Shown here: piece by piece, positions 29,204 through 62,970 of the stretch
Position numbering within the stretch: the first letter of the stretch is position 1
Layout of the letters: each line of letters begins with the position of its first letter
Source: Macrostomum hystrix
Taxonomy: Eukaryota > Animalia > Platyhelminthes
DNA length: 64,000 nt
Assembly (NCBI GenBank): GCA_950097015.1
Contig: CATNEN010000039.1
Span: forward strand, 744,001 to 808,000
Reading direction: 5' to 3'
Notes under the pieces: generated by a model
What the model saw: only the letters and a program-made list of their open reading frames with translations
What the model was told of the DNA's origin: nothing
Databases searched by the model: none
Translations under genes and position numbers: made by a program

Positions 29204-32200
29204 AGCCAGATATGCTGAATACTAGCCAGATATGCTGAATAATAGCCAGATATGCTGAATACCAGCTAGATATGCTGAATAGTAGCCAGATATGCTGAAT
29301 ACCAGCCAGATATGCTGAATAGTAGCCAGATATGCTGAATAATAGCCAGATATGCTGAATACCAGCTAGATATGCTGAATAGTAGCCAGATATGCTGAAT
29401 ACCAGCCAGATATGCTGAATAGTAGCCAGATATGCTGAATAGTAGCCAGATATGTTGAATACTAGCCAGATATGCTGAATACCAGCCAGATATGCTGAAT
29501 ACCAGCCAGATATGCTGAATAGTAGCCAGATATGCTGAATAGTAGCCAGATATGCTGAATACCAGCCAGATATGCTGAATAGTAGCCAGATATGCTGAAT
29601 ACCAGCCAGATATGCTGAATAGTAGCCAGATATGCTGAATACCAGCTAGATATGCTGAATAGTAGCCAGATATGCTGAATACCAGCCAGATATGCTGAAT
29701 AGTAGCCAGATATGCTGAATAGTAGCCACATATGCTGAATAGTAGCTAGATATGCTGAATAGTAGCCAGATATGCTGAATAGTAGCCAGATATGCTGAAT
29801 AGTAGCCAGATATGCTGAATAGTTGCCAGATATGCTGAATAGTAGCCAGATATGCTGAATAATAGCCAGATATGCTGAATAGTAGCCAGATATGCTGAAT
29901 ACTAGCCAGATATGCTGAATACTAGCCAGATATGCTGAATAGTAGCCAGATATGCTGAATACTAGCCAGATATGCTGAATAGTAGCCAGATATGCTGAAT
30001 ACCAGCTAGATATGCTGAATAGTAGCCAGATATGCTGAATACCAGCCAGATATGCTGAATAGTAGCCAGATATGCTGAATACTAGCCAGATATGCTGAAT
30101 ACCAGCTAGATATGCTGAATAGTAGCCAGATATGCTGAATACCAGCCAGATATGCTGAATACTAGCCAGATATGCTGAATACCAGCCAGATATGCTGAAT
30201 ACCAGCCAGATATGCTGAATACCAGCCAGATATGCTGAATAGTAGCCAGATATGCTGAATACTAGCCAGATATGCTGAATAGTAGCCAGATATGCTGAAT
30301 ACCAGCTAGATATGCTGAATAGTAGCCAGATATGCTGAATACCAGCCAGATATGCTGAATACCAGCCAGATATGCTTAATACCAGCCAGATATGCTGAAT
30401 ACCAGCTAGATATGCTGAATAGTAGCCAGATATGCTGAATAGTAGCCAGATATGCTGAATAGTAGCCAGATATGCTGAATACCAGCTAGATATGCTGAAT
30501 AGTAGCCAGATATGCTGAATAGTAGCCAGATATGCTGAATACCAGCCAGATATGCTGAATACCAGCTAGATATGCTGAATAGTAGCCAGATATGCTGAAT
30601 AGTAGCCAGATATGCTGAATACCAGCCAGATATGCTGAATAGTAGCCAGATATGCTGAATAGTAGCCAGATATGCTGAATACTAGCCAGATATGCTGAAT
30701 ACAAGCCAGATATGCTGAATACCAGCCAGATATGCTGAATACCAGCCAGATATGCTGAATAGTAGCCAGATATGCTGAATACTAGCCAGATATGCTGAAT
30801 AGTAGCCAGATATGCTGAATACCAGCTAGATATGCTGAATAGTAGCCAGATATGCTGAATACCAGCCAGATATGCTGAATACCAGCTAGATATGCTGAAT
30901 ACTAGCCAGATATGCTGAATACAAGCCAGATATGCTGAATACCAGCCAGATATGCTGAATACCAGCCAGATATGCTGAATACCAGCCAGATATGCTAAAT
31001 ACCAGCCAGATATGCTGAATAGTAGCCAGATATGCTGAATACCAGCCAGATATGCTGAATAGTAGCCAGATATGCTGAATACCAGCCAGATATGCTGAAT
31101 AGTAGCCAGATATGCTGAATACTAGCCAGATATGCTGAATACCAGCTAGATATGCTGAATAGTAGCCAGATGCTGAATAGTAGCCAGATATGCTGAATAC
31201 CAGCCAGATATGCTGAATAGTAGCCAGATATGCTGAATAGTAGCCAGATATGCTGAATACTAGCCAGATATGCTGAATACAAGCCAGATATGCTGAATAC
31301 CAGCCAGATATGCTGAATACCAGCCAGATATGCTGAATAGTAGCCAGATATGCTGAATACTAGCCAGATATGCTGAATAGTAGCCAGATATGCTGAATAC
31401 CAGCTAGATATGCTGAATAGTAGCCAGATATGCTGAATACCAGCCAGATATGCTGAATACCAGCTAGATATGCTGAATAGTAGCCAGATATGCTGAATAC
31501 CAGCCAGATATGCTGAATACCAGCTAGATATGCTGAATAGTAGCCAGATATGCTGAATAGTAGCCAGATATGCTGAATAGTAGCCAGATATGCTGAATAC
31601 CAGCCAGATATGCTGAATAGTAGCCAGATATGCTGAATACTAGCCAGATATGCTGAATAGTAGCCAGATATGCTGAATACCAGCTAGATATGCTGAATAG
31701 TAGCCAGATATGCTGAATACCAGCCAGATATGCTGAATAGTAGCCAGATATGCTGAATAGTAGCCACATATGCTGAATAGTAGCTAGATATGCTGAATAG
31801 TAGCCAGATATGCTGAATAGTAGCCAGATATGCTGAATAGTAGCCAGATATGCTGAATAGTAGCCAGATATGCTGAATAGTAGCCAGATATGCTGAATAC
31901 TAGCCAGATATGCTGAATACTAGCCAGATATGCTGAATACTAGCCAGATATGCTGAATACTAGCCAGATATGCTGAATAGTAGCCAGATATGCTGAATAC
32001 CAGCTAGATATGCTGAATAGTAGCCAGATATGCTGAATACCAGCCAGATATGCTGAATAGTAGCCAGATATGCTGAATACTAGCCAGATATGCTGAATAC
32101 CAGCTAGATATGCTGAATAGTAGCCAGATATGCTGAATACCAGCCAGATATGCTGAATACTAGCCAGATATGCTGAATACCAGCCAGATATGCTGAATAC

Positions 32201-35200
32201 CAGCCAGATATGCTGAATACCAGCCAGATATGCTGAATAGTAGCCAGATATGCTGAATACTAGCCAGATATGCTGAATAGTAGCCAGATATGCTGAATAC
32301 CAGCTAGATATGCTGAATAGTAGCCAGATATGCTGAATACCAGCCAGATATGCTGAATACCAGCCAGATATGCTGAATACCAGCCAGATATGCTGAATAC
32401 CAGCTAGATATGCTGAATAGTAGCCAGATATGCTGAATAGTAGCCAGATATGCTGAATACCAGCTAGATATGCTGAATAGTAGCCAGATATGCTGAATAG
32501 TAGCCAGATATGCTGAATACCAGCCAGATATGCTGAATACCAGCTAGATATGCTGAATAGTAGCCAGATATGCTGAATAGTAGCCAGATATGCTGAATAC
32601 CAGCCAGATATGCTGAATAGTAGCCAGATATGCTGAATAGTAGCCAGATATGCTGAATACTAGCCAGATATGCTGAATACAAGCCAGATATGCTGAATAC
32701 CAGCCAGATATGCTGAATACCAGCCAGATATGCTGAATAGTAGCCAGATATGCTGAATACCAGCTAGATATGCTGAATACTAGCCAGATATGCTGAATAC
32801 CAGCCAGATATGCTGAATACCAGCTAGATATGCTGAATACTAGCCAGATATGCTGAATACCAGCCAGATATGCTGAATACCAGCCAGATATGCTGAATAC
32901 CAGCCAGATATGCTGAATAGTAGCCAGATATGCTGAATACCAGCCAGATATGCTGAATAGTAGCCAGATATGCTGAATACCAGCCAGATATGCTGAATAG
33001 TAGCCAGATATGCTGAATACTAGCCAGATATGCCGAATACCAGCTAGATATGCTGAATAGTAGCCAGATGCTGAATAGTAGCCAGATATGCTGAATACCA
33101 GCCAGATATGCTGAATAGTAGCCAGATATGCTGAATAGTAGCCAGATATGCTGAATACTAGCCAGATATGCTGAATACAAGCCAGATATGCTGAATACCA
33201 GCCAGATATGCTGAATACCAGCCAGATATGCTGAATAGTAGCCAGATATGCTGAATAGTAGCCAGATATGCTGAATAGTAGCCAGATATGCTGAATACCA
33301 GCCAGATATGCTGAATAGTAGCCAGATATGCTGAATACTAGCCAGATATGCTGAATAGTAGCCAGATATGCTGAATAGTAGCCAGATATGCTGAATAGTA
33401 GCCAGATATGCTGAATAGTAGCCAGATATGCTGAATACTAGCCAGATATGCTGAATACCAGCTAGATATGCTGAATAGTAGCCAGATATGCTGAATACCA
33501 GCCAGATATGCTGAATACCAGCCAGATATGCTGAATAGTAGCCAGATATGCTGAATAGTAGCCAGATATGCTGAATACCAGCTAGATATGCTGAATACTA
33601 GCCAGATATGCTGAATACAAGCCAGATATGCTGAATACCAGCCAGATATGCTGAATACCAGCCAGATATGCTGAATACCAGCCAGATATGCTGAATACCA
33701 GCCAGATATGCTGAATACCAGCCAGATATGCTGAATACCAGCCAGATATGCTGAATACCAGCCAGATATGCTGAATACAAGCCAGATATGCTGAATAGTA
33801 GCCAGATATGCTGAATAGTAGCCAGATATGCTGAATAGTAGCCAGATATGCTGAATACCAGCCAGATATGCTGAATATTAGCCAGATATGCTGAATACCA
33901 GCCAGATATGCTGAATACCAGCCAGATATGCTGAATATTAGCCAGATATGCTGAATACCAGCCAGATATGCTGAATACCAGCCAGATATGCTGAATACCA
34001 GCCAGATATGCTGAATAGTAGCCAGATATGCTGAATAGTAGCCAGATATGCTGAATAGTAGCCAGATATGCTGAATAGTAGCCAGATATGCTGAATAGTA
34101 GCCAGATATGCTGAATACCAGCCAGATATGCTGAATAGTAGCCAGATATGCTGAATACCAGCCAGATATGCTGAATACCAGCCAGATATGCTGAATAGTA
34201 GCCAGATATGCTGAATACCAGCCAGATATGCTGAATAGTAGCCAGATATGCTGAATACCAGCCAGATATGCTGAATAGTAGCCAGATATGCTGAATACTA
34301 GCCAGATATGCTGAATAATAGCCAGATATGCTGAATACTAGCCAGATATGCTGAATACTAGCCAGATATGCTGAATACCAGCCAGATATGCTGAATAGTA
34401 GCCAGATATGCTGAATACTAGCCAGATATGCTGAATACTAGCCAGATATGCTGAATACCAGCCAGATATGCTGAATAGTAGCCAGATATGCTGAATACCA
34501 GCTAGATATGCTGAATAGTAGCCAGATATGCTGAATAGTAGCCAGATATGCTGAATACCAGCCAGATATGCTGAATAGTAGCCAGATATGCTGAATACCA
34601 GCCAGATATGCTGAATAGTAGCCAGATATGCTGAATACTAGCCAGATATGCTGAATACCAGCTAGATATGCTGAATAGTAGCCAGATGCTGAATAGTAGC
34701 CAGATATGCTGAATACCAGCCAGATATGCTGAATAGTAGCCAGATATGCTGAATAGTAGCCAGATATGCTGAATACTAGCCAGATATGCTGAATACAAGC
34801 CAGATATGCTGAATACCAGCCAGATATGCTGAATACCAGCCAGATATGCTGAATAGTAGCCAGATATGCTGAATAGTAGCCAGATATGCTGAATAGTAGC
34901 CAGATATGCTGAATACCAGCCAGATATGCTGAATAGTAGCCAGATATGCTGAATACTAGCCAGATATGCTGAATAGTAGCCAGATATGCTGAATAGTAGC
35001 CAGATATGCTGAATAGTAGCCAGATATGCTGAATAGTAGCCAGATATGCTGAATACTAGCCAGATATGCTGAATACCAGCTAGATATGCTGAATAGTAGC
35101 CAGATATGCTGAATACCAGCCAGATATGCTGAATACCAGCCAGATATGCTGAATACCAGCCAGATATGCTGAATAGTAGCCAGATATGCTGAATACCAGC

Positions 35201-37614
35201 TAGATATGCTGAATACTAGCCAGATATGCTGAATACAAGCCAGATATGCTGAATACCAGCCAGATATGCTGAATACCAGCCAGATATGCTGAATACCAGC
35301 CAGATATGCTGAATACCAGCCAGATATGCTGAATACCAGCCAGATATGCTGAATACCAGCCAGATATGCTGAATACCAGCCAGATATGCTGAATACAAGC
35401 CAGATATGCTGAATAGTAGCCAGATATGCTGAATAGTAGCCAGATATGCTGAATAGTAGCCAGATATGCTGAATACCAGCCAGATATGCTGAATATTAGC
35501 CAGATATGCTGAATACCAGCCAGATATGCTGAATACCAGCCAGATATGCTGAATATTAGCCAGATATGCTGAATACCAGCCAGATATGCTGAATACCAGC
35601 CAGATATGCTGAATACCAGCCAGATATGCTGAATAGTAGCCAGATATGCTGAATAGTAGCCAGATATGCTGAATAGTAGCCAGATATGCTGAATAGTAGC
35701 CAGATATGCTGAATAGTAGCCAGATATGCTGAATACCAGCCAGATATGCTGAATAGTAGCCAGATATGCTGAATACCAGCCAGATATGCTGAATACCAGC
35801 CAGATATGCTGAATAGTAGCCAGATATGCTGAATACCAGCCAGATATGCTGAATAGTAGCCAGATATGCTGAATACCAGCCAGATATGCTGAATAGTAGC
35901 CAGATATGCTGAATACTAGCCAGATATGCTGAATAATAGCCAGATATGCTGAATACTAGCCAGATATGCTGAATACTAGCCAGATATGCTGAATACCAGC
36001 CAGATATGCTGAATAGTAGCCAGATATGCTGAATACTAGCCAGATATGCTGAATACTAGCCAGATATGCTGAATACCAGCCAGATATGCTGAATAGTAGC
36101 CAGATATGCTGAATACCAGCTAGATATGCTGAATAGTAGCCAGATATGCTGAATAGTAGCCAGATATGCTGAATACCAGCCAGATATGCTGAATAGTAGC
36201 CAGATATGCTGAATACCAGCCAGATATGCTGAATACCAGCCAGATATGCTGAATAGTAGCCAGATATGCTGAATACCAGCCAGATATGCTGAATACCAGC
36301 TAGATATGCTGAATAGTAGCCAGATATGCTGAATAGTAGCCAGATATGCTGAATACCAGCCAGATATGCTGAATAGTAGCCAGATATGCTGAATAGTAGC
36401 CAGATATGCTGAATACTAGCCAGATATGCCTAATACAAGCCAGATATGCTGAATACCAGCCAGATATGCTGAATACCAGCCAGATATGCTGAATAGTAGC
36501 CAGATATGCTGAATACTAGCCAGATATGCTGAATAGTAGCCAGATATGCTGAATACCAGCTAGATATGCTGAATAGTAGCCAGATATGCTGAATACCAGC
36601 CAGATATGCTGAATACCAGCTAGATATGCTGAATACTAGCCAGATATGCTGAATACAAGCCAGATATGCTGAATACCAGCCAGATATGCTGAATACCAGC
36701 CAGATATGCTGAATACCAGCCAGATATGCTGAATACCAGCCAGATATGCTGAATAGTAGCCAGATATGCTGAATACCAGCCAGATATGCTGAATAGTAGC
36801 CAGATATGCTGAATACAAGCCAGATATGCTGAATAGTAGCCAGATATGCTGAATAGTAGCCAGATATGCTGAATAGTAGCCAGATATGCTGAATAGTAGC
36901 CAGATATGCTGAATACCAGCCAGATATGCTGAATAGTAGCCAGATATGCTGAATACCAGCCAGATATGCTGAATACCAGCCAGATATGCTGAATAGTAGC
37001 CAGATATGCTGAATACCAGCCAGATATGCTGAATAGTAGCCAGATATGCTGAATACCAGCCAGATATGCTGAATAGTAGCCAGATATGCTGAATACTAGC
37101 CAGATATGCTGAATAATAGCCAGATATGCTGAATACTAGCCAGATATGCTGAATACTAGCCAGATATGCTGAATACCAGCCAGATATGCTGAATAGTAGC
37201 CAGATATGCTGAATACTAGCCAGATATGCTGAATAGTAGCCAGATATGCTGAATAGTAGCCAGATATGCTGAATACTAGCCAGATATGCTGAATACTAGC
37301 CAGATATGCTGAATACCAGCCAGATATGCTGAATACTAGCCAGATATGCTAAATAGTAGCCAGATATGCTGAATACTAGCCAGATATGCTGAATACCAGC
37401 CAGATATGCTGAATACCAGCCAGATATGCTGAATACTAGCCAGATATGCTGAATACCAGCCAGATATGCTGAATAGTAGCCAGATATGCTGAATAGTAGC
37501 CAGATATGCTGAATACTAGCCAGATATGCTGAATAGTAGCCAGATATGCTGAATACCAGCCAGATATGCTGAATAGTAGCCAGATATGCTGAATAGTAGC
37601 CAGATATGCTGAAT
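29204..37614. repeat. 8.4-kb satellite, 20-bp unit agccagatatgctgaat+(agt/acc/act/aca/aat/att), ~420 copies
   Basis: Continuous array; three 18-bp deletion units at ~31170, ~33068 and ~34686. Confidence 0.98.
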
Positions 37615-38210
37615 ATAGCTGGTGTCAAATGCAGCTCAAGCACTTTTACTGTATATCAGTGCATTAGATGTATCAAACTGCAGATTTACTTCCTAACTGT
37701 GCTAATTTCATGTCGTCTACAGCTCAATATTTGTTTATTATTTTTCCAATAAACTAATAATAAACGTTTGCAAATATGTAATAAAGAATAAATAATTTCA
37801 AATAAACGTGAGCGACGACTTCGCGAGAAGGCGCGGCAAGGCCTCGGCCGCATTTCAGGGACGGCGCAGGCGTTGGCAGGGTCGCACGGATCGCTGCATC
37901 GACCGGCTGCTGATGGACGCCCCCCCGCCCCGACCAAGCGGAAACCGTGACGCGGTTACGGTCGCTGGCCCTCAGTCGCGCGATCTGACGCTCCCCCTGA
38001 CCTCGTGGCCGGTGGGGCTGCGTCTAGTTAGTTAGTTTCATTTTCTAGGTATTGTACCTAAAGTGCCGCTATGAAAATGTAGAACAATTATACACCTGTT
38101 TGCCTTTACGGGCTTCTTCGGGCGAGAGATGGCCAAGGCCCATAGCACAGGGGTCACATAATGTCAATTCCCTAGGAATTCCAGCACATCGATGCAATTG
38201 CCTTTACCGG

Positions 38211-39018
38211 CTCGATCGCTATCCTAAAATATGGAAACCCAAAGAGCAGTCACTTACTCCGAAACCACGGGAGGTGAGTGGTGTGATATGCTCGATCGCT
38301 ATCCTAAAATATGGAAACCCAAAGAGCAGTCACTTACTCCGAAACCACGGGAGGTGAGTGGTGTGATATGCTCGATCGCTATCCTAAAATATGGAAACCC
38401 AAAGAGCAGTCACTTACTCCGAAACCACGGGAGGTGAGTGGTGTGATATGCTCGATCGCTATCCTAAAATATGGAAACCCAAAGAGCAGTCACTTACTCC
38501 GAAACCACGGGAGGTGAGTGGTGTGATATGCTCGATCGCTATCCTAAAATATGGAAACCCAAAGAGCAGTCACTTACTCCGAAACCACGGGAGGTGAGTG
38601 GTGTGATATGCTCGATCGCTATCCTAAAATATGGAAACCCAAAGAGCAGTCACTTACTCCGAAACCACGGGAGGTGAGTGGTGTGATATGCTCGATCGCT
38701 ATCCTAAAATATGGAAACCCAAAGAGCAGTCACTTACTCCGAAACCACGGGAGGTGAGTGGTGTGATATGCTCGATCGCTATCCTAAAATATGGAAACCC
38801 AAAGAGCAGTCACTTACTCCGAAACCACGGGAGGTGAGTGGTGTGATATGCTCGATCGCTATCCTAAAATATGGAAACCCAAAGAGCAGTCACTTACTCC
38901 GAAACCACGGGAGGTGAGTGGTGTGATATGCTCGATCGCTATCCTAAAATATGGAAACCCAAAGAGCAGTCACTTACTCCGAAACCACGGGAGGTGAGTG
39001 GTGTGATATGCTCGATCG
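38211..39018. repeat. Perfect 80-bp tandem repeat x10
   Basis: ctcgatcgctatcctaaaatatggaaacccaaagagcagtcacttactccgaaaccacgggaggtgagtggtgtgatatg; no visible variants. Confidence 0.97.
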
Positions 39019-39959
39019 TAACTGAGACCAATTTGGCTATTAAGACAACGTTTTCTGGCCCTGATTGGACGTAAATCTAAATATTCTGGGAAGGGCAAGA
39101 CACCCGCCTCAGCCCGCTCACTTGCACCTGGCATCCAGGTGTACATAGCCTAGCGTACATTAAGTCAACGACTATACGCGGCGCACTACATCTCTCCCAT
39201 TTTCGAATGCTAACGACAGGAGATAAAGGTACAATAAAACAAGCTCCGAAATGGTTTAAAACTGAGAAAAGGAAATAAAATAATGACGCACAAATATTGC
39301 ATAAACACCAAAATTATAGTCCGCGTCAGTTCAGTCTCTGCACAAAGGACCACTAGAAGGACGGAAACACTTAGTTTCTTGGAAAATTTATTGAAGGCAG
39401 ATTTTGACGGGGAAAATGTACTAGCGAGGTAGGTTTTTCACATTTAAATGTTGATAACTTTGTTCTTTTGCTGTTCTTTTAATACATCTCGCAAAAATTG
39501 TTGGCATTAGATTCGAATGTTAGGAAGCTTAAGCATGAAAAATTGATCTTTCTTTTATTTTCGCTATTTATGAAGCACAATTGCCAGTCAATAGCTATCT
39601 TCTTGTGATTAACTCATTTTTACAGTCACTTTCTAATAATTTATAAGTGCATTAGGATAATTTTGTCGGATATTTTCATTAACAAATCAGTAGGCCAAGC
39701 TATAGGCTAAATCATGTCTGCTTGGTTGCTATTGTGATTCATGATAAAAGACGAAAATAAAATGAGGATCAATTATCATGAAAAATGCTTTCTAATATTC
39801 GTTGAAGCAAAATGTTTTTCAGGATATAATAAAAGAACAGCTTTAAGTTATCGACTTTTTTATTTGAAAAAACGTAAAACTTTCCAATCTCGCCAGTGCA
39901 TTTTCCGTTCAAATCTGCCTTTAATAACTTTTCCAAGAAACGAAGTGTCCCTCCTTCTT

Positions 39960-40515
39960 CTAGTCGTCATTGTCTCTGCACTGATCGATTCACACCGTCT
40001 CTGGCAGCTCGTGGGTGGGGACGGAGAGCCACCGGGGAGGCCTGCCGCCCGGCGCTGCGCCATCAGCAGTGCTGGCTGGATCAGGGCTGTTGACCTGACC
40101 GCCGTGCAGTGGCACCAGCAGATCGCAACATCGCGGCGCAGCAACAACGAGTTTCCGACCAACCGATCGACCTTCCACGCTCCGCTCTCGTATGGCGTCT
40201 GCGTTTTGCTGGTGCCGATTTGCCGTCGCAACACCGAGTCACCGACCCGGATTTCGTGTGGTCAGGTCTGAGACACTACTGCGTCATCTTGCGTCTGCTC
40301 GTTGCTTCGTCACGGCCTAGGCATTGGCGTATGTCTCTCGAAGCTGGACGTTCGTTGATGCAGACCCGCTGGGACGGCCGCGCGGCCGGTATGACATCGT
40401 TTGGCTGCCGGCCTATGAGTAGCTCGTCCGGCGTGCGGCCGGTGGCCGTATGTGGCGTGGTTCGGTAATCCAGAAGCCAGTCATCCAGTCTCTCCGCTCT
40501 TCGATGGCCGCCCGC
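39960..40515 (-). mobile_element. Decayed Gypsy integrase C-terminal fragment
   Basis: Minus strand reads LDDWLLDYRTTPHTATGRTPDELLIGRQP (integrase end motif), then HEIRVGDSVLRRQ...PYESGAWKV (GPY/F-like region); reading frame disrupted. Confidence 0.75.
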
Positions 40516-41386
40516 AAGACCATATTACAGGGACAACTAAAGTAGTATTAGGCTAGCTATTAGTAGTGATCCTGTCCTTGCTAATCGACCGGTTCAGCCG
40601 TTCCGTCATGCTATTATTTAGTTATTAAGTTAAGTTATGATTATTGAGTTATGGATCGACTAAGATACATGTACAGATTACTCCCATACTTTTTATTAAA
40701 AGCATGCAATTTTTTCTTTGTATGGCTACAGATCTAGTCGTGATATCGTGCCTAATTCATGATGACGTCCGTGATTTTGTTTTAACAACTGCAGTTTCGC
40801 AGAAGTTTTTTTGAGACATTCGATTATTGCTGCATTTCCCTCGTGCTGCGTGTGCGTGTATATTATTTTAGCTAATCGGAACAGTCCAATTGGGTATGCT
40901 CTTTGATTGTCTCATCCACGTATTCGATTTAATCAAGAAAAAAGCCAGCTGTTTACTTAAGACATCTAGACATTAATAAACCTTAAGTCAAGCACATTTA
41001 AACATAAGCTTTTCTCAAATTGTCGGTTCAAAGTTTTATAAAACTGCATAAAGTCATAAGAAATCAATTGATATTTTCTAAAACATCTTGTCTCTGGACA
41101 TTAAGGGTGCCTGTCTTTCTTTACCTTATTGTCTGACGCCTTCGACTTATATACTTCGACTTTTCTTGCTTTATTTCTGTACAAGTTCAAGTCCTTTTTG
41201 AAATTTCAGTTTAATATGCACAGCTAGTTAGCAATCAGATTCCAATCATATACATATGATCATTTGTATTTTTTTAAACATCTATTTTCTCTAGTTAGTC
41301 ACTTGGAACTGACTGACCCTAGGCCTAGCTCACTAGTATTGAACTAGATTCTTATATCAGACAACAATCTGATATTCCATTACAAA

Positions 41387-44300
41387 ATGGACTCTGATCA
41401 TCAAATGAAAATCGTGATGTAAGTGGCATTTTTATTGTTTTTTTGTGAAAGCATCTTTCTTTCTAGTTATTTTATTGTTATTTTGTATTATGATTAAGTT
41501 GTCTTATTGAAAAGACATTATGAGGTTGTTGGCCTAGAGACATACTCTGACTTCTTAGAATCTTAGTTCTTTGATCACTGTGAGGCTGGTTAGAGTAGTT
41601 GTGTATTGTTTTTGTTGCTTGTTTTATTGAATTATATAATATTATTGATGTGTTGGAAGGCAGGGAGAAAGACGAGCAGTTGTATTTGTATGAATAATTT
41701 GTAGGCCAGTGTGACCTTGTGTGACCTTGTCAACCTTGCTAGTGTTTCTCATTCATTTGTTTCATTATAAGATATTTTTCCATAGGCCGCTGGCTTGGGG
41801 CTCTCTTTACTACAGTAATGTGTTAGGAGGTTTTACCCCTAGACACTTCGCACAAGCACAACAAAAAGTAATTGCAGTTAGTATGTAAGTCCATATTAAC
41901 TTCCCCCTCCTCAAAAATGGATACTCTCTACTCGTTAGTTCGTTGTTTACATTTCTTTGATAAGTCTCTTGGGTGGCATTCCTTTGTTTCCCCTGTTGGA
42001 CTGACAGACCTTCTGATGTTGCTGATGCATTCATTCTATTGGACTAGAGCATAGCTGTTACCATGACTGTTTTTCTGTAAGGTACTAGGTTGAGTGACAT
42101 CTAAATTTTACCATTGTCTAGTCAGTATGTGAAGTTACCAACAATTTTAGTACCTCTGAATGGCGAGGTGAAAGGTGATTTGCCCTTGGGCACATGGGGA
42201 AGATGGACATATACCAGGTTGCCGACTCTTAAATGCCGCTTGAAAACCCGGTGTTTTTCTTGTCTTGTTGGGCAGTGGAACTGATGTGGAGCAGTTAAAT
42301 ATTGTCTTTCTCCGACCTGTCCGCCTGTGTTGTGGCTTTTTGGGGCTGAAAGTTTGCTCTAATATTCCGGCCAAAGATTAGTTTGGCGGGTGAGTCCCCA
42401 TTGTCATTTGGTGTTGTTTGGAAGCTGAAGATTGTCTGTTGCATGCTGTCTTAAAAAATTTTCCAGTCAGTTTTGAATGTTTGGGCTGCATTTTTCAACG
42501 TACGATTGAACACTTCCACTTTCCCATTTTGTCTGGGTTTGTAAAGTGGTACTCTTTAGTGCTGTATATCGTGGGAATAGAGAAATTCCTCCATCTCTTT
42601 AGATACGAAAGACACATTGTTAGATACTAAGGTGTCTGGGTTGCCGAATCTGTTGAAAACTTCAGTCAGCCATTTAATTAGACTTGATGACCTTGTATCT
42701 CCATACATGTGCAACCTCCCAAATCTTAGCCGGCCGTGCGACTTAGTTTTTGCTCTCATTTGCGACTTAGTTCATTTCATTGCTCTATTTACAACTTAGT
42801 TTGCTCTCATTTGCTCTCTTTTTCTCTCCCCTTTTTCCTTTTCTTCACGCCTTCCTTTTTTGTCCCTTGGTCCCCCCTTTGATTTTTTTGCGCTTGGTCT
42901 ATTGGTTTTTGCGACTTACCTTGCTTGGCCCTTGTTTCACCCGGCCGGTTCGGCCGGGTCGGCCGGGTGTTGCGCATGTATGTGTATCTCCCATAAGGAG
43001 TATCTCTGGGTATGACGAATGGTAATCAATCAGTGCGACAACAAATTGTTGGTTTTTGGGGAGCAGTCACAAATGGGCCAGTGATGTCGATAGCAAGCTT
43101 TGACCAAGGTCTGTCAGGCTTCCTGGTTGGTCCTCCATCAGGCACAATAATCTTGTGTGATTTTGCACTGTCCTGACATGGTAGACAGAATTTGACATAG
43201 TTCGTTATGGCACTGTCTATGCCTGGCCACCAATAAGCTGACCGTAGAAGTCACTTCATTCGCATGATGCCTGGGTGGCCTTTGTGGGCACGCTTTAGGA
43301 TTGACTTGGTTAGGCTGCTAGGTGGTACAATTTTTTTACCATGGAGAAGAAATCCGCTTTCAATTGTCAGTTTGTCTTGTACATGTGCAAATGCCTTAAG
43401 TTCTGGTTTCCTTTTGTCAATTTTTCTGGAGCTCCGCACGGCCATCATAACTTCCTGCAATATAGGATCTGTGCTTGTGTGTGCCAGCAAATTTTTTTTG
43501 CAGAAGGATTGTTGATGTCATTTGAAATCAAAATATTGCGGATTGTAAGTTCTTCGTCCTCCACGCTGTCCAGTCCGTCATCAACTGGTAGCCTGGACAA
43601 GGCGTCAGCATACGTGGTTTGTGCTTCTGGGCTTGTATACTATATCGTAGTCAAACTCGGACAAACGGACTAACCAGCGAGTAAACTTGGTTGACTTCGT
43701 TTTGTTACTGTGTTGTCGTAAGAGACTCGTTAGTGCAGAGTTATCCGTTTGTAGGGTGAAACGCGGGCCTAGCAAGTATTTCGCGAAGTGTTCACATGCC
43801 CAGACACAGGCAAGGGCTTCGCGCTCGTTAACTGCGTAGTTTTGTTCTCTCTCGGAGAGCGCATGGGACGCGAATGCTATCGGCACCTCTACTTCATTTT
43901 GCACTTGAGACAGGACGGCGCCGATTCCGGCATCTGATGCATCGGTTGTCAAAATTGTGGGGAGATTCGGGTCGAAAATGGCCAGTTCCAGTCGCTCATG
44001 AAGTAGGGTCTTTACTTTTTCGAAAGCAGTTTGTTGGTCGTTTCCCCAAATGAATTTCTGATTTTGTCGTGTCAGTCGCCTCAGGGGTTCAGTGGCCCCA
44101 GCTAGGTCTCAAACGAAATTAGAATGGTAGTTGATGAGGCCTAAAAAGGAACGTAGCTCCGTTTGGTTTTTTGGTGTCAGTGTGTTCCTGATTGCCGAGA
44201 GTTTGTCTGGATCAGACTCGATTCGTCCTTTTTAGTTTATTATATATCCGAGGAAGGGTACCCGTTCTTGGCGGAACATGCATTTCGAAATGTTGATGCG

Positions 44301-47300
44301 GAAATCTTTTTCGTTTAGTCGTTCGAGTACCTTGCGTAATTCGTCGTCGAGCTCTCTGATCGTTCGTCCATGCACGAGTATGTCGTCGATGTACTATCGT
44401 ACTATACTATACTATACTATACTATCGTTTGGGTGCAGTCTCCGAGGGTATCGCTCACACATCGCTGAAATACAGATGCAGAGTCTGCGAGGCCCATTGG
44501 TAGGCGATTGTAGGCATACAGTCCTATTGGCGTTGCTGTTGTCGTCAAGAGCTTACTCTCTTCATCGAGTTTTATATGGAAATAGGCGCGTTTTAGGTCG
44601 ATCTTTGACTTGTACCACGCGCCGTTCAGCTTGAGGAACAATTCGCTGATGTTTGGTATTGGATGCCTGTCCGGGACAATAAACTTGTTCAGATAGGAAA
44701 AGTCGGTTGTTATTCGGACGCCACCATCCGTTTTCCAGACTGTGACGAGTGCGTTGCTCCATGAGCTCTTCACAACAGGAGTCCAAATCCCAAAATCTTC
44801 CATGTTCTTAATCTCGTTGATGGCTGCTTCGCGGCGGGCAAGTGGGATTGTACGGGCGGGAATGTATTTTAAGGTTGCGTCGCTCTGTAGGGTAATGTTG
44901 TGCGTATAATCCGGATAGGTACCAAGCGATTCGTCCTTGAGTTGTGGCAAATCATCAGCAACATCACACTTCAGCTCTGTGACCGTCGATACTTGCATGG
45001 AGGCGCCATCGAATTTGAGTCCTAGTCTTCTAATCAGATCTAGTCCGACGATAGGTTTCAGATAGTCTTGTGTGACGTACAGTGTTGCAGTTGTCACCCG
45101 GCCTTGAATGCTGACTTCTGGGGATATGTATCCGATGATGCCTGGGACGGCGCTGTTATCGTAGTTCCGCAGCGTCAGATTTGTTGGTCTGATTTCTATT
45201 TCTGGCCAGAGGCGTTTCGAATCCGCTATTCGAATGGTGGACACCTCGGCGGCCGTGTCAAGCAACGCCTAATAGCTACCGCTTCTGCCTCAGTCAGCGC
45301 TCTGACCAACTGTCCTCAGGCGTCTACTGATGGTTCGGATCTTCATCTGCGGCTTTGCTCTTCGCTGTGAGATGATGCAGTGGGAGGCAAAATGGTTTGG
45401 TTTGCCGCATCCTTTACAGATCTTTCCCAGAGCCGGACATTTCGGATCTTTGTATGCATGGGTGCTCGATCCGCAACCCATGCATTGCGGCTTCTTGCTT
45501 TTGTCAGCGGAGAGAGTCGTCGATGATGGTTTCTTATTTCTGGTTTCCGGTTTCTGGTCGAACCACGTCATTGTGCGTTTCTGCACTTGCTGAATTGGCG
45601 CAGCTCCGTTGCTCCTGATGATTTCTCCGGTTTGTGACGCGGACTCATCGGCTCGCATGATAGTCAAAAAGGACTGCAGGTCGATGGTCGGCTCCGCCAG
45701 TAGTTTTTCTTGTGTGTTCTTCCACTAGCATGGCCAGTTGCCGTTCCTCCCCGGCTCCGACTCACAGTCTGCTATAAGTGTACGCAAGGCTGTGAAGAAA
45801 TCGTTTACGGATTCACCGTGTTCTTGCTTCCGCCGTCGGAATTCGTACTCGGCGCGGACTGGGTTATGCCTTTTGCTGAATATCGTCTTTAGTTGGCCCA
45901 TGTAGTTTTCAAACATAGTCGTCGTCTCGTTATCTTGATCTTCTCTTGTCTCGTTGTCTTGAATATTGTGCGCATACGGTATGCGTCGTCCTTCAGACCC
46001 TAAGGAAGTGCGCAGAAATGCCTTCTTGAAATCCTCTGCGAGTCTGACTCAAGTTGTTGTTTCTGTGAGGAAAAATAAATCCAAGACTTCTCGTAGCCAC
46101 ATGTCCCATTTGACAGGTGGCTCGCCGGGGTTCTCGAGGAATCTTGACGGTTGCGGGATCGACACGCGAATCTGCTGAGAATGGAGAGCTGGGGAGGTTG
46201 CTGCTGCTGCCGATTTTGGATTCGCAGCAGGCGATGTTGGAGCCATGGGTTGCTGTTATCCTCGTCGCCATTGAACTTCCACACCAGATGATGTGTTGGA
46301 AGGCAGGGAGAAAGACGAGCAGTTGTATTCGTATGAATAATTCGTAGGCAGGTGTGACCTTGTCGTCAGCCTTGCTCGTGCTTCGTTATATTTTTCCATA
46401 GGCCGCTGGCTTGCGGGCTCTCTTTACTACAGTAATGTGTTAGGAGGTTTTACCCCTAGACACTTCGCACGAGCACAACAAAAAGTAATCGCAGTTAGTA
46501 TGTAAGTCCACATCAATTATACAGTTTTCTAACCTAGTCAAGGCCTACTTAAATTTTACTCCAGGTATACTAGTACTTGCTTGCTTGGAAAAAATACTGC
46601 TGCAACAGTAAAAAATAATTTGTAATAATTGAATTCAACTTTGGTAATTAGAGTAATAAAGAAATAAAAAAACGTTTTTTTCCAAAACTTTTACTCTAAA
46701 ACTTTAAAAAAATATCTAGCTTTTTAAGACCAGTTGAAATTTGGCCTTAGATAACTAGGTATTGCCATTTACTATTAATTTTCAAGTCTTAATACTAAGA
46801 TTAATTAGTTTTGTAAGTTTGTTTATAATATTTTTTGAACAAAATATAATTTGATTTAATTTGATTTGATGCCCCACACTAAATGCCAATTTCTCATGCT
46901 AAGCATAACACCAACTGCCAAAATATCATGCCACGCACCTCACCAACTGCGGATTTCTCATGCCGTGCACCTCATTAAATGCTGTATTCTCATGCCCTGC
47001 ACCTCAAACTGCCAAAATTTTCATGCCGTGCACATCACCAACTGCCGTATTCTCATGTCATGCATTCAGGACTCGCCTTCGGGACTCGATGTCGAATGTT
47101 ATCAACAGCCATTGCGAGCTGCTTCTGGGCATCTGGCAGCGCTGCGGCATCGACACGGACCACCTGCTGAACTCGCGGGTGCCGATCATCACAGACTGGG
47201 TGCACGACCTCCTGGAGGACATGGTCCGCGGCGAGGCGGACACTGAGAACGACCTGATGGAGGCCGTCCGATCCAAGCTGGCTGCCGCGCAGAGGCTGCA

Positions 47301-50300
47301 CGCTGAGCTGCAGGTCGAGCTAGCTGCCGCAGCTGCTGGTGTCAACGCGGCTGCCTTGGCAACCGAGCTGGCCTCGCTTGAACCAGAGCGCGCTGTGGCC
47401 GCGCACAAGGGCCTGCTGCAGCGCGAGAAGCAGCTAAATCTGTGCACCCTGAAGCTTCAGGCCATGCAGCTGAGGTTGTCGCTGATGTCTGCGCTCAGTC
47501 AGATGCGCACTCTGTGGCGTCGGCTGCAGATTGACAGGTGTGTTTGATTCCACTGCTTTATTACTAGCATGAATAGCGAAGTGCGCATTTTACAATAGCA
47601 GCTCACTCACTGTCTCCAGCTCTGACTCCGGCCGGCAGTACTGGGAGCGCCTGGCTGAGACCAAGGAGCCGACTGCCGACTGCCTCCGTCGCATGGAGGC
47701 TGAGCTGTGCCGCCTTCGCCAGCTTGTCCTGCCCCGCCTGCGTGACTGCATCGCCGACTGCCGGGTGGAGCTCGCCGAGTTGGCCGACCGGTGCCTGGCC
47801 GCTCCTAGCGAGCTGGAGGCCATGCGACCACTGCTGGAGTCCCAGGATTGGTCGGAAGACCTGCTGGACCGGCACGAGGCCGAAGCGGCCCGGCTGCGAC
47901 GTCGCTTCGAACAGAATGCTGGATTCTACACCTGCGTAGCCGACTGGCAGGTGAGTGAGCGCTTCTGTGGGATGCTTGGAGACCGCTGACTGAGAGCTGC
48001 TTGGAGACCGCTGTCTGTGGGATGCTTCGAGACCGCTGTCTGTGGGATGCTTGGAGACCGCTGACTGTGGGCTGCTTCGAGACCGCTGTCTGTGGGATGC
48101 TTGGAGACCGCTGACTGTGGGCTGCTTCGAGACCGCTGTCTGTGGGATGCTTGGAGACCGCTGTCTGTGGGATGCTTGGAGACCGCTGACTGAGAGCTGC
48201 TTGGAGACCGCTGACTGAGAGCTGCTTGGAGACCGCTGACTGAGAGCTGCTTGGAGACCGCTGACTGAGTTCCGCTTTCCCTCCGCTTCAGACGGCCTGG
48301 AGCAGTCTGCAGACACTGCTACAGCGCCTAAAGGACCCGGCGGTGCTGAACAATCGCGGCGGAGTCCTGCTCCGATTGGAGCGCGAGAAAAAGCGCGCCC
48401 AGGCCGCTCTGGTCGCCAAGGAGGCTGAGCTGGGCCGCCTGGCTGCAGCCCGCGACCCGGCCAGCCCCCTGACAGTGCGCGGCCAGCCAATTGAGGAATT
48501 CTTGTACTGCGAGAAGCAGCGCGCCGAGGCCGAGAAGGAGAACGAAGCCAAGCGGCGGCTGGAGAAGCACGAGACCACCCTGAGGCGAGAGCTGCAGTTC
48601 GGCTCCAAGCCAGCAAGTCCACTGCAGCGCCGGCTCATCCACAACTCAAGCCGCCTGCAGTGCAAGGTAAAGACTCCGGCTTGCTCCCCTTTTGCCTGCC
48701 TCCTGTACACTGCGGTTTGTTTATTTTCACAGCATTTACTGCTGCCATCTGCCCACCCTGATCTATTCTTGCTTATCTAACTCTGCTACCTGCCTGTCCT
48801 ACCCCTGCCTGTCCTACCCCTGCCTGTCCTATCCCTGCCTGTCCTATCCCTGCCTGTCCTATCCCTGCCTGTCCTATCCCTGCCTGCCCTATCCCTCCTG
48901 TCATATCCCTGCCTGCCCTATCCCTCCTGTCATAATTCTGCCTGCCCTATCCCTCCTGTCATATCCCTGCCTGCCCTATCCCTCCCTGTCCTATCCCTGC
49001 CTGCCCTATCCCTCCTGTCATATCCCTGACTGTCCTATCCCTTAACCCTCATGTGAACGCGCTACCTTCATCAGACTCCAGCCACGCCAACGGTCAGCAA
49101 AACTCCCATGAGAGGCGCAGCCGCCTCCGCCGCCAAGTCAGCCGGCCGGCTGCAGCTTCTGCGCACGCCGGCTAACGGCCACGGCTCTTCCGTGAAGAAA
49201 TTCACTCCGGTAACTTGCGCCCGCGCTACTTTTAGTAGTGTACGCGCGCATATAGCCGCTTGCTGAAAAAATTGCACTTCTCGGTGTTGTATTTAACACT
49301 CACGGTTGTTGAATTGTGTTTGCATACTAACCATGCGTTAGCTCTTATAGTAGGAGTATATATGCATGTAGTAAGTCTATTATCACTGAATAATGAAAAG
49401 GTTGTGTGTTAGCTGATGCCAATAACACCCTCCCTCTTTATATACAGGGCTTGCCGTCAGTTTCAAAGAATCAGGTATCTCATTATGCAGTTTAATCCAT
49501 TGTAATAAAAATCACGAATTGTGCAGAAACGCATATTTTACATCAAGTTCAACACGTGTTATGAGTATTTGCGAATAGTTCGTTCCATTTTCATAAATTT
49601 TACTTCCGTTTTCCAGACTAGTAGTAAAAAAGCGAATGCACGAAATTCATCTCATAGCAGAATTACGTTATTGGCGTTATCGTAACTGACGTTAGCCTTA
49701 ACACCACATTTCAGAGCAAACTGGGCTGCTCGGGGCGCGTTGAGAAGGTGAGAACAAAATAACTGACTGACGATGCATGACAGCTGTGTTTATGGGATCT
49801 CATGCAGACTGTGTTTATGGGATCACATGCAGCCTGTGTTTATGGGATCTCATGCAGCCTGTGTTTATGGGATCTCACGCAGCCTGTGTTTATGGGATCT
49901 CATGCAGCCTGTGTTTATGGGATCTCATGCAGCCTGTGTTTATGGGATCTCATGCAGCCTGTGTTTATGGGATCTCATGCAGCCTGTGTTTGTGGGATCT
50001 CATGCAGCCTGTGTTTATTGGATCTCATGCAGCCTGTGTTTATGGGATCACATGCAGCCTGTGTTTATGGGATCTCATGCAGCCTGTGTTTATGGGATCT
50101 CATGCAGCCTGTGTTTATGGGATCTCATGCAGCCTGTGTTTATGGGATCTCATGCAGCCTGTGTTTATGGGATCTCATGCAGCCTGTGTTTATGGGATCT
50201 CATGCAGCCTGTGTTTATGGGATCTCATGCAGCCTGTGTTTATGGGATCTCATGCAGCCTGTGTTTATGGGATCTCATGCAGCCTGTGTTTATGGGATCT

Positions 50301-61700: not shown

Positions 61701-62970
61701 GGCCGGGTGTTGCGCATGTATGATAACTAAGTTATAAGGGGTTGTAGCGCTACCACGAGAACCTCTATCATTTGTAAGATAAAATAATTAACAAGCTGCA
61801 AAAGTACAGTCATTCAGATTTGAAGTTTGTGTCTCAAATTATTTTTGCTTATCAGCTAATTAAAAAAATTAAAACTATTTCCAGAAATTTGGTTGTTTTA
61901 GGGACTAACTTAGTTCAAGGGTATAGTTTGGTCTTTGTGAGGTCAAGACTCAAGATGGCTCTCAGCAGGGCAAGAGTGGTCTTTGGGAGGATCGTTGTTC
62001 CTGCTCGTTGAAAGGGGAGATATTAAGTCCTTGGGTGGTTAACCAGTTAACCAGACAAATAACAACTAGTTAGCATTTAGTAATAGCATTTTACTGATTC
62101 TGATTAAATCAAAATATTTAGTCAATTTAATTTGATTATTTGTCTTATTCCCAGGCCAAATGGCAGTTCAATTAATCATTATCCCACATTTTACTGGCCA
62201 GTCTTTTGAATATGCTAATAAATAAATAAAATATAATACTTCATTATGGGACTGTAGCCCTCATTGGAATATAGACTAGAGACAGAGTAATGAAAGGTGA
62301 AAATAAAATATATATTCTAGCCACTAAAACATTGTGCACTGTTCACTAACACAAGAATTTATAATTGATGATTTTTGAGGTAGGGTATTGGCTATTAAGG
62401 ATGTGAAGGACTAATATTTCACATCTATGCTTCTATAAAAAATTTAAGGCTACATTTGGAAGGGCAAAAGAAGAAAGAAGAACAAAGCAAATAAAGGTAC
62501 AAACAAAACTGGGAACTTTGCTACTGCTACACAATGCTAAAATGTCATGATTTTTTAGAAAACATATACAGTTGGAATGCATAATAATAGGCTATGCGCA
62601 ACATAAGTGCGGAACAGTATGAACAACATTTTTAACTAAAAAATGCTTACCTTTGTCGGTCCCATGCATCAACTATGAACACTATTCCATCAACAGCTGG
62701 AAAGTATGTCTTCCAGACTTTCCTTGCTTGCTCATGACCACCAAGATCAAATGTGGTAAACTTCATGCCACCAATCGATAGCTCTTCCGTGGTAGGATAG
62801 AGCGTTGGATTGTGCGTTCCCATTCGATCATCCTTAAGCATGTGAAGAAGTGTAGTCTTGCCTGCATTGTCTAGACCCAAGAAAACGAGCTTGCCGCTTT
62901 TCTTCCACAAGCCAAGGTAACCTAAAATTCCTGACACGGAGCCAGAAATCCAATCCCACCAGCCGCTCAT
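58776..62970 (-). CDS. SAR1: Small COPII GTPase SAR1; exons 62970-62651, 59052-58776 (198 aa)
   Basis: [77 protein letters not shown] phase-2 intron (AG|gtaagc...cag|A) gives 198 aa. Confidence 0.96.
59160..60660. repeat. 29-bp minisatellite ggatctgggagcattctagatagacatag, interrupted by a MITE
   Basis: Array on both sides of 59720-60362 in the SAR1 intron. Confidence 0.92.
59720..60362. mobile_element. hAT/Charlie-like MITE; perfect 16-bp TIR caggggtgggcaaact; 8-bp TSD TTCTAGAT; internal 16-bp minisatellite
   Basis: TSD 59712-59719 and 60363-60370, with the CTAG core typical of Charlie-type targets. Confidence 0.93.
61362..62068. mobile_element. Older TIR element (23-bp TIR tagttgttatttgtc.ggttaac) hosting the 281-bp MITE
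   Basis: Inverted termini with one mismatch; no clean TSD. Confidence 0.65.
61442..61722. mobile_element. 281-bp MITE, second copy; 8-bp TSD ATAACTAA
   Basis: TSD 61434-61441 and 61723-61730; same family as 42702-42982. Confidence 0.93.

Follow-up and report, generated by a model that had tools for sequence, protein, structure and literature searches.

In the flatworm Macrostomum hystrix, a retrotransposon inserted into intron 1 of a MAP65/PRC1-family gene, antisense to the gene, has lost most CpG dinucleotides at the end facing host exon 1 and kept them at the other end. This one-sided decay probably records a position-defined, sharply bounded domain that is methylated in the germ lineage, and not methylation aimed at transposons. 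The long terminal repeats (LTRs) of such elements are identical at insertion and serve as an internal clock, and deamination of 5-methylcytosine (5mC) turns CpG into TpG or CpA. The window, i.e., the whole stretch of DNA analysed, comprises 64,000 nucleotides, and its positions are used throughout. The element and its parts are as follows:

41641-41645: left copy of the target-site duplication ATTAT
41646-46515, minus strand: LTR retrotransposon, degraded and dead, classed as Ty3/gypsy-type
41646-41898, minus strand: 3' LTR, 253 bp, decayed, nearest to host exon 1
41899-41915, minus strand: candidate polypurine tract abutting the 3' LTR, minus strand reading GAGGAGGGGGAAG
42556-42759, minus strand: integrase core remnant, weak rve match, interrupted by the MITE
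42694-42701 and 42983-42990: 8-bp duplication TGTATCTC of the MITE
42702-42982: MITE nested in the element, 281 bp, 12-bp terminal inverted repeats
43251-43490, minus strand: integrase zinc-binding remnant, weak match
43605-43952, minus strand: RNase H domain, PF17917 (RT_RNaseH), E 5e-31
44417-45265, minus strand: reverse transcriptase, PF00078 (RVT_1), E 3e-12
45725-45916, minus strand: gag remnant, weak match
46289-46515, minus strand: 5' LTR, 227 bp, undecayed, 11 CpGs
46516-46520: right copy of the target-site duplication ATTAT

The element is flanked by identical target-site duplications of 5 bp each, its distal (5') LTR has the termini TG...CA, and the near (3') LTR now ends in ...TTA through decay. 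A stretch beginning with TGG, a candidate primer-binding site, adjoins the 5' LTR. On the minus strand, the domains follow in the order gag (weak), reverse transcriptase, RNase H and integrase (zinc-binding and rve, both weak), and an integrase placed after the reverse transcriptase is the Ty3/gypsy-type order, from which copia differs. Judged by its LTRs and target duplications as well as by this predicted domain order, the element is of the Ty3/gypsy type. An Rfam scan of the window gave no matches, and a repeat search of the whole window for further LTR pairs was swamped by a 20-bp satellite.

The coordinates and lengths of both LTRs and their CpG counts, 3 in the near and 11 in the distal copy, proved to be as the initial annotation had given them. 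Every CpG of the near LTR is also present in the distal LTR, in agreement with the claim that the near copy gained none, and the five losses by CpG>TpG/CpA named as a minimum were all found, together with a sixth inside a 15-bp stretch deleted from the distal LTR. The direction of change was polarised by five other LTR copies of the family from the same genome, family copies being compared site by site. With a single exception, these outgroup copies carry the state of the distal LTR wherever the two LTRs differ by substitution; thus, CpGs were lost from the near LTR and not gained by its twin. Of 12 ancestral CpGs, the near LTR keeps 3 and has lost 9, whereas the distal LTR has lost one, and none by substitution (9/12 vs 1/12, Fisher p=0.003; by substitution only, 7/12 vs 0/11, p=0.005). 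Further changes in the near LTR comprise two CpA>TpA at its end, a 10-bp duplication and a 5-bp insertion, while private changes of the distal LTR are limited to one A>G and the 15-bp deletion, with 0 C>T changes.

The gene around the element is expressed and spliced, and was modelled as follows:

41176-41418, plus strand: exon 1 of the MAP65/PRC1-like gene, minimum extent, from spliced contigs
41419-47069, plus strand: intron 1, 5651 bp; 776 bp before the insertion
47070-47537, plus strand: exon 2, CpG observed/expected (o/e) 0.86
47620-47986, plus strand: exon 3 region, PF03999 positions 251-351, E 2e-12; start set by the contig letters after 47537, 47986 not being a mapped exon end
48265-48777, plus strand: open frame with the next MAP65 exon, PF03999 positions 352-473, E 1e-6; open-frame limits, not mapped exon ends

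Contigs splice 41418 to 47070, and in three runs 47070 and 47537 are exact contig ends, the letters past the 47070 end being those of 41389-41418 in the window and the letters past the 47537 end those of the exon at 47620. Exon 1 carries an ATG at 41387, in frame with exon 2, and its splice donor GTAAGT starts at 41419. Its start follows from the 243 nt or more of transcript that precede the junction, and the resulting transcript start of ~41176 is a minimum estimate, which a spliced leader or an upstream exon could shift. In a search with the Pfam profile PF03999 that was done exon by exon, exons unjoined, 47573-47986 scored 47.3 bits and 48265-48777 scored 28.1 bits (curated cut-off 26.9), and exon 2 reached 16.7 bits, below the cut-off, at N-terminal profile positions. 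By these matches above the cut-off, the predicted protein is assigned to the MAP65/ASE1/PRC1 microtubule-bundling family. The spliced contigs and the PF03999 matches in the downstream exons thereby uphold the earlier placement of the first PRC1 exon to the left of the element. A gene start on the right of the element, which would make the CpG-rich half promoter-proximal and was suggested by a weak Pfam match in 46960-47547, is refuted by the 41418-47070 splice.

Inside the element, the body had been described as CpG-poorer left of ~43500, and the o/e indeed amounts to 0.38-0.43 over 41899-43400 and to 1.04-1.20 over 43401-46288, with a switch near 43480. About 66% of the CpGs are lost in the left ~1.8 kb and almost none in the distal 3 kb; the loss forms a plateau of 57-75% per sub-interval and ends within ~200-300 bp near 43480. 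The left and right interiors were compared with different sister copies, the sequence right of 43211 having no comparator of the left type and 43212-44346 and 45725-46288 none at all; on the left, 30 sites that are CpG in the sister copy C24 read TpG/CpA here, with 0 in reverse, versus 4 such changes and 6 in reverse against copy C33 on the right (left-right contrast p=5e-5). Per cytosine, C>T changes on the left affect 29% of CpG, 8% of CpA (mostly CAG), 2.6% of CpT and 3.4% of CpC, i.e., a CpG rate 3.7 times the CpA rate, compared with 1-3% in every class on the right. Changes at CpT and CpC together (3.0% left vs 3.1% right) and transversions (2.7% vs 2.1%) are equal in both halves; thus, the halves are of the same age.

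This equality bears on the possibility that the element itself is chimeric, with its right 3 kb gene-converted from a younger copy or its left part older, in which case the asymmetry would be one of age. Such an origin would fit the near identity of the distal LTR to other copies, with one private substitution, and the larger number of non-CpG changes and indels in the near LTR (about 4-5 vs 1). Nevertheless, only CpG and CpA changes are in excess between halves, the 5-bp target duplications match, the assembly holds no donor copy, the distal LTR has its private 15-bp deletion, and age does not explain a CpG-free host flank, so that very little probability is given to it. A chimera made by the assembly is ruled out by a contig of an independent read set, which spans the decay boundary (42959-44380) with 0 differences from the assembly. 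Additionally, run X2 has the element in identical form, run X10 yielded no contig on this stretch, and the comparison of runs X2, X5, X6 and X10 gave no information on the insertion date.

The changes are also symmetric between the strands (17 C>T vs 13 G>A at CpG; 10:8 elsewhere). CpG>TpG and CpG>CpA are similar in number and lie far above the ~3% at CpT/CpC, which is the form of a DNMT footprint. A promoter-near mutation process without methylation, for example one in which cytosines of single-stranded DNA are deaminated in R-loops or by a deaminase acting in transcription, would account for a zone that begins at the transcript start and for the affected CpA, a context not expected from CpG methylation alone. 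Deamination in R-loops or coupled to transcription should, however, favour the non-template strand, contrary to the observed symmetry, and the tenfold CpG preference is a hallmark of 5mC, with DNMT1-like and DNMT3-like loci both present in the genome; only a slight chance is accordingly left to this process. Besides, APOBEC-type editing of the cDNA was rejected, as it needs strand-asymmetric G>A on the coding strand of the element before integration, while the changes are symmetric and the adjacent host sequence is depleted as well. Repeat-induced point mutation (RIP) of the fungal type was likewise rejected, since the twin LTR is without C>T changes and CpG is struck more than CpA.

The decay extends beyond the element into the host gene, where the following stretches were delimited:

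40521-41157: AT-rich patch upstream of the gene, 21 CpG, o/e 1.05
about 41158-43480: CpG-decay domain, ~2.3 kb, or ~2.0 kb without the nested MITE; right edge known within about 100-200 bp
46516-46855: old intron sequence right of the element, 1 CpG vs 4.9 expected (p about 0.04)

Within the domain lie exon 1 of the host gene, the intron flank left of the element, and the element's 3' LTR and integrase part. Its left edge lies at about the transcript start, beside the CpG-retaining patch, which is presumed to be an unmethylated promoter region. Exon 1 has 1 CpG vs 6 expected, and the host sequence 41176-41645, contiguous with the decayed part of the element, has 1 vs 10 expected. Exons 2-4, with a CpG o/e of 0.85-0.88, are undepleted though, prior to the insertion, no more than about 1.0-2.0 kb separated them from the start, and thus no simple distance rule holds; the zone either does not have a fixed length or spares GC-rich exons. 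The depletion at 46516-46855 is possibly a fossil of the zone from before the insertion. It could also mean that the methylated unit comprises all of intron 1, from which the 5' 3 kb of the element escape through an active 5' LTR promoter or dense CpGs, so that the element itself would set the boundary. The undepleted exons 2-4 and the start of the undecayed part exactly at the 5' end of the element agree with such a unit. Still, the left 1.8 kb had an equal CpG density at insertion and were not protected, a second element (L052) has a decayed 5' LTR, and the right-flank count is small and fitted equally well by the pre-insertion fossil. An intron-wide unit is hence considered unlikely.

The nested MITE is 98-100% identical to many genomic copies and is young. 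Of 17 family CpGs it retains 14, and the three that are lost all changed by CpG transitions; its private or minority changes comprise three at CpG, all transitions, and one elsewhere. Among 27 MITE copies, CpG loss was uncorrelated with the CpG o/e of the flanks (rho 0.02), these copies being picked by similarity, all young and thus uninformative; the result does not weigh against MITE copies as probes of local methylation. Since transposon sequence and this highly repeated MITE form the centre of the domain, methylation might have been triggered by the transposon, e.g., guided by small RNAs against its 3' part, and have spread left into exon 1, with the gene position incidental; the depletion of the host flank is in fact not significantly above that of the element (1 CpG vs 3.4 expected at 66% loss). 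Against this stand the undecayed state of other family copies and other elements, the youth of the MITE, which does not allow for a 66% loss, the coincidence of the left domain edge with the transcript start and the promoter patch, and a further locus (L047), where CpG-free zones lie beside a CpG-retaining patch. Altogether, a trigger within the transposon appears quite improbable.

Elsewhere in the genome, other copies of the family keep 10-12 of the 12 LTR CpGs. A survey of LTR pairs covered 10 loci, five of them with recognisable pairs, of which four (identical, 96%, 90% and 83% identity) were compared and the fifth (L049, 100% identical) was uninformative. An unrelated old pair with 83% identity has 22 and 22 CpGs and CpG differences of only 5:1, whereas the second element, polarised by CG vs TG/CA logic only, exhibits a one-sided CpG loss of 6:0 on its 5' LTR, which abuts a CpG-free host flank of 650 bp. 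As the decayed copy is the 5' LTR in this case, the effect is independent of element polarity. The initial annotation had also called for a search for DNMT1 and DNMT3. Both were found as predicted loci by domain matches: a DNMT1-like locus (C2:2150957-2160021) with a PF00145 methylase and a DNMT1-RFD domain, and a DNMT3-like locus (C11:3925561-3928589) with a PF00145 methylase and an ADD_DNMT3 domain.

The proposal that germline CpG methylation here follows position and not transposon identity gains from the polarity of change, the CpG/CpA spectrum, the strand symmetry, the equal background divergence, the contiguous host flank, the two DNMT loci, the undecayed sister copies and L052; its rule that the first 2-3 kb of the gene are methylated was too simple in view of exons 2-4. 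In the favoured scenario, a sharply bounded stretch of ~2 kb would carry 5mC in the gamete-forming lineage of M. hystrix. It would begin at about the transcript start of the MAP65/PRC1-like gene, take in exon 1 and reach into intron 1, with the mark chiefly at CpG and probably to a smaller extent at CpA (mostly CAG). The Ty3/gypsy-type element would have landed in intron 1, 228 bp from the start of the intron, its two LTRs being identical. The ~1.8 kb of it nearest exon 1 would have come to lie inside the zone, where ~66% of the CpGs were deaminated, C>T and G>A equally, and the distal 3 kb with the element's 5' LTR outside it, where CpGs were kept. As such a zone covers only part of the element, methylation would follow the place in the host gene and not transposon identity. 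We infer 5mC as the cause, its action in germ-lineage cells and the control of the far boundary from sequence.

The element amounts to a natural experiment, in which the ends were identical on arrival, a boundary splits one piece of DNA and the LTR pair is the internal control. As far as sequence comparison can tell, it shows that the decay post-dates insertion, varies with place and strikes CpG and CpA specifically, and base composition, age and transposon identity are ruled out as causes. For M. hystrix, and perhaps for macrostomid flatworms generally, we tentatively suggest a methylome of narrow, sharply bounded domains of ~1-2.3 kb. These domains may be tied to transcript starts, where any DNA, be it exon 1, intron or transposon, would be methylated at CpG and less at CAG, and downstream exons and transposons elsewhere would be spared. 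No methylation pattern has been described for flatworms (PMC9246332); for M. lignano, reviews report low 5mC and both enzymes, the pattern being unknown. If this holds, a methylome architecture would be described for a free-living flatworm for the first time, and gene-body methylation in animals would gain a new variant. The element predicts the exact location of 5mC, and LTR pairs together with young MITE copies are suggested as genome-wide probes of past methylation domains from sequence alone.

Compared with known systems, the pattern combines familiar and deviating features. In vertebrates, both LTRs decay together as the whole element is methylated, whereas here one LTR decays ~25 times faster than its twin; thus, the pair reports a chromatin boundary and not age. 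In fungal RIP, each copy of a duplication is mutated, with a preference for CpA. The element resembles RIP targets in the one-directional C>T/G>A change of a repeated sequence, including CpA>TpA, and differs in the untouched twin LTR and 3 kb, the dominance of CpG, the inclusion of unique host sequence and the animal host. In Nasonia vitripennis and the honeybee, methylation is concentrated within about 1-2 kb of the gene start and drops to background past 2 kb, and in these Hymenoptera transposons are almost unmethylated, promoters unmethylated and global 5mC low (PMC3794928). Like this 5'-biased gene-body methylation, the M. hystrix footprint (41158-43480) starts near the minimum transcript start of ~41176. 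In Nasonia, the mark favours coding exons, and methylation outside CpG is extremely rare. In M. hystrix, in contrast, exon 1, intron 1 and the transposon within that intron bear the footprint. Exons 2-4 are undepleted, so that the depletion falls on intron 1 with its inserted element and shows no enrichment on coding exons, and CpA, mostly as CAG, is affected as well.

The one-sided CpG decay within the LTR retrotransposon residing in intron 1 of the PRC1-like gene, which belongs to the MAP65/PRC1 family, is real and highly non-random. The element carries the following features.

Features of the retrotransposon and its nested MITE
41646-46515, minus strand: LTR retrotransposon, 4,870 bp, Ty3/gypsy type, with the 5-bp duplication ATTAT at both flanks
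45725-45916, minus strand: gag (weak match)
44417-45265, minus strand: reverse transcriptase
43605-43952, minus strand: RNase H
43251-43490 and 42556-42759, minus strand: integrase remnants
42702-42982: nested MITE, 281 bp, with 12-bp terminal inverted repeats (CATACATG...) and an 8-bp target duplication TGTATCTC

The gypsy domain order on the minus strand and the purine tract adjoining the left LTR show that the 5' LTR is the one on the right (46289-46515) and the 3' LTR the one on the left (41646-41898). Both halves of the element feature broken reading frames. The initial annotation had counted 3 CpGs in the near (left) LTR and 11 in the distal one, and these counts were reproduced. The family is rare, with five other LTR copies in the genome (220,453,370 bases in 42 contigs, the window being C39:744001-808000), and site-by-site comparison showed that these side with the distal LTR at all substitution differences except one. 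Polarization by the family copies thus gave an ancestral LTR with 12 CpGs and placed the losses on the near LTR, as had been proposed. Only 3 of the 12 ancestral CpGs are left there, six having been lost by CpG>TpG or CpG>CpA transitions, one by C>A, one via a 1-bp deletion and one within a small rearrangement; in addition, two CpA>TpA changes occur at its extreme end. The distal LTR features one private A>G change and a private 15-bp deletion which took out one CpG. The resulting loss is 9/12 in the near vs. 1/12 in the distal LTR (p=0.003), and the other family copies kept 10-12 of the 12.

The same asymmetry extends into the interior, for which the left and right comparators differ and parts of the right half are without one: a truncated copy on contig C24 covers 41899-42702 and 42984-43211, and a copy on contig C33 covers 44347-45724. 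On the left, 30 sites are CpG in the C24 copy and TpG or CpA in the window, the reverse being found at none, and 19 of the 52 CpGs of this copy are retained. The corresponding counts against the C33 copy on the right were 4 and 6, with 93 vs. 94 CpGs. Rates per cytosine were calculated with the sister copy taken as the starting state.

C>T changes per cytosine by dinucleotide context
CpG: left 29%, right 1-3%
CpA: left 8%, right 1-3%
CpT: left 2.6%, right 1-3%
CpC: left 3.4%, right 1-3%

Neither CpT and CpC changes combined (3.0% left vs. 3.1% right) nor transversions (2.7% vs. 2.1%) differ between the halves, which are therefore equally old, the faster mutation on the left being limited to CpG and CpA. 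The changes at CpG show strand symmetry (17 C>T vs. 13 G>A). Within 41899-43211, the hit rate of CpA was about three times that of CpT and CpC (11/138 vs. 7/235), with six of the 11 hits in CAG and none in CAC, and this excess may be a hint of non-CpG methylation. Altogether, 42 of 64 CpGs were lost in the left part and at most 4 of 105 in the right, a difference in decay rate of roughly 25-fold or more inside one insertion. Readings as RIP, as APOBEC editing, as a chimeric element or as deamination near promoters with a strand bias each failed at least one of the tests applied.

The position of the element within its host gene was obtained from spliced contigs. In three runs, contigs span 47070-47537 exactly, continue downstream into the exon starting at 47620 and are preceded upstream by the letters of 41389-41418, where the genome continues with GTAAGT. 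Exon 1 thus ends at 41418, and the ATG at 41387 is in frame with exon 2.

Intron of the host gene
41419-47069, plus strand: intron 1 of the PRC1-like gene, from spliced contigs

The first exon therefore lies left of the element, as the initial annotation had it; a start right of the element, the first idea, based on a weak MAP65 match at 46960-47547 alone, was overturned by these contigs. In an exon-by-exon search with Pfam MAP65_ASE1, two downstream exons scored above the cut-off and exon 2 below it. The element inserted 228 bp into intron 1, antisense to the gene. As the transcript reaches at least 243 nt upstream of the junction, it starts at or left of ~41176, provided that exon 1 is continuous; this start would move if a spliced leader or an extra exon were involved. 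A few kb upstream of the gene, an 8.4-kb satellite (29204-37619; 20-bp unit, ~421 copies, 93% matches) is practically free of CpG (one in the bins of 30001-37000) with a TpA o/e of ~1.6. It is followed by an 80-bp unit repeated ten times in tandem with 100% identity (38210-39018), containing a donor-like GGTGAGT motif and without a match in Rfam. Minisatellite density is unusual throughout the window (50 rows in the tandem-repeat scan, ~33 distinct arrays once overlaps are merged); most periods fall within 15-40 bp, and numerous arrays combine 90-100% homogeneity with a location in introns or between genes.

Observed/expected CpG (o/e) across the decayed domain
40521-41157: upstream patch, 1.05
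41176-41418: exon 1, 1 CpG in 243 bp
41419-41645: left intron flank, 0 CpG in 227 bp
41646-41898: 3' LTR, 0.30
41899-43400: left interior minus the MITE, 0.38-0.43
42702-42982: young MITE, 0.92
from ~43480: remainder of the element, 1.0-1.2

The element is accordingly CpG-poor on the left and normal from ~43480 rightward, in agreement with the initial annotation. The decay forms a plateau, with 57-75% lost per sub-interval, and ends within 200-300 bp. An assembly join at this boundary is excluded, as one contig of an independent read set runs across it without difference. The domain extends over ~41158-43480 (C39:785158-787480), a length of 2.3 kb that drops to 2.0 kb once the MITE is subtracted. 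It still contains ~41 CpGs, 14 of them in the MITE, vs. ~200 in the part to its right (C39:787481-790515). The block at 39950-40520, ahead of the promoter patch (GC 0.62, CpG o/e 1.10 for the block), has open frames on both strands, none with a Pfam match, and may belong to the promoter or derive from an element of unknown type. Further CpG-poor stretches outside tandem repeats are located at 26701-28200 (7 CpGs vs. 46 expected), 60601-61400 (3 vs. 20) and 61801-62700 (5 vs. 25).

That the zone is set by position holds insofar as the one-sided decay is tied to place, but a simple distance rule does not: exons 2-4, at a pre-insertion distance of 1.0-2.0 kb from the start, keep a CpG o/e of 0.85-0.88, so that no fixed distance applied to all sequence can define the zone. 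One possibility is that exon 1 and intron 1 are filled to a maximum of ~2 kb; another is that GC-rich exons are spared. To the right of the element, the old intron sequence is CpG-poor, with 1 CpG vs. 4.9 expected. It could be the fossil of an earlier zone; it is equally compatible with methylation of the whole intron today, the 5' part of the element escaping, and the data fit either.

The MITE family comprises 928 genomic candidates at first look, of which 40 were scored and found mostly 97-100% identical; the nested copy matches many genomic copies at 98-100% identity. The family looks hAT-like and very recently active. The copy at 42702-42982 lost 3 of 17 family CpGs, every one via CpG transition, with one other difference, and shows the largest CpG loss among 27 young copies, which weakly suggests that the decay process is still running.

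Whether place or transposon identity is decisive was addressed with ten loci bearing older gypsy-type elements. LTR pairs were present in five, one of which (locus L049) is 100% identical and hence uninformative. Among the four pairs compared, one shows full identity and another 96%, the latter being free of CpG differences. The old pair at L050:1559-7068 (C1:10865100-10875099) shares 83% identity over ~700 bp with 22 CpGs per LTR, and its CpG-type differences are 5:1 vs. 68 other substitutions; judged by these, this long-resident transposon is free of methylation-type decay. Transposons are consequently not methylated by default. A second one-sided case is the minus-strand gypsy-type element at L052:3633-8275 (C33:3461960-3471959) with an LTR CpG loss of 6:0. 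Here, the location of gag and RNase H shows the decayed LTR (7441-7651) to be the 5' LTR, and the 3' LTR lost none. The decayed LTR borders 650 bp of host sequence devoid of CpG, beyond which lies an AT-rich patch with a CpG o/e of 1-2. One-sided decay thus follows the neighborhood and not the polarity of the element. At C39:11512000-11521999, two CpG-free zones of ~1.5 and 0.75 kb flank a CpG-retaining patch.

The genome encodes candidates for the enzymes, both DNMT1-like and DNMT3-like.

Loci with a cytosine-5 methyltransferase domain
C2:2150957-2160021, minus strand: DNMT1-like, additionally with RFD domain
C11:3925561-3928589, minus strand: DNMT3-like, additionally with ADD domain
C39:20070480-20070950, plus strand: third methylase-domain locus, possibly DNMT2

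For M. lignano, reviews report DNMT1 and DNMT3 together with low 5mC; the M. hystrix genome paper makes no mention of methylation or CpG (Wiberg et al., 2023, PMC10468722). Position-dependent germline methylation, as initially proposed, is the best explanation of the decay, argued entirely from mutation footprints. The locus serves as an internal control, by which the decay is dated to after the insertion and tied to position. Among described patterns, the closest is the 5'-biased gene-body methylation seen in Hymenoptera, which occupies the initial 1 kb of coding sequence, reaches background past 2 kb and spares transposons (PMC3794928). Nevertheless, the hymenopteran mark lies on coding exons, whereas the footprint in M. 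hystrix, a member of a different phylum, covers exon 1, intron 1 and an intronic transposon and involves CpA.
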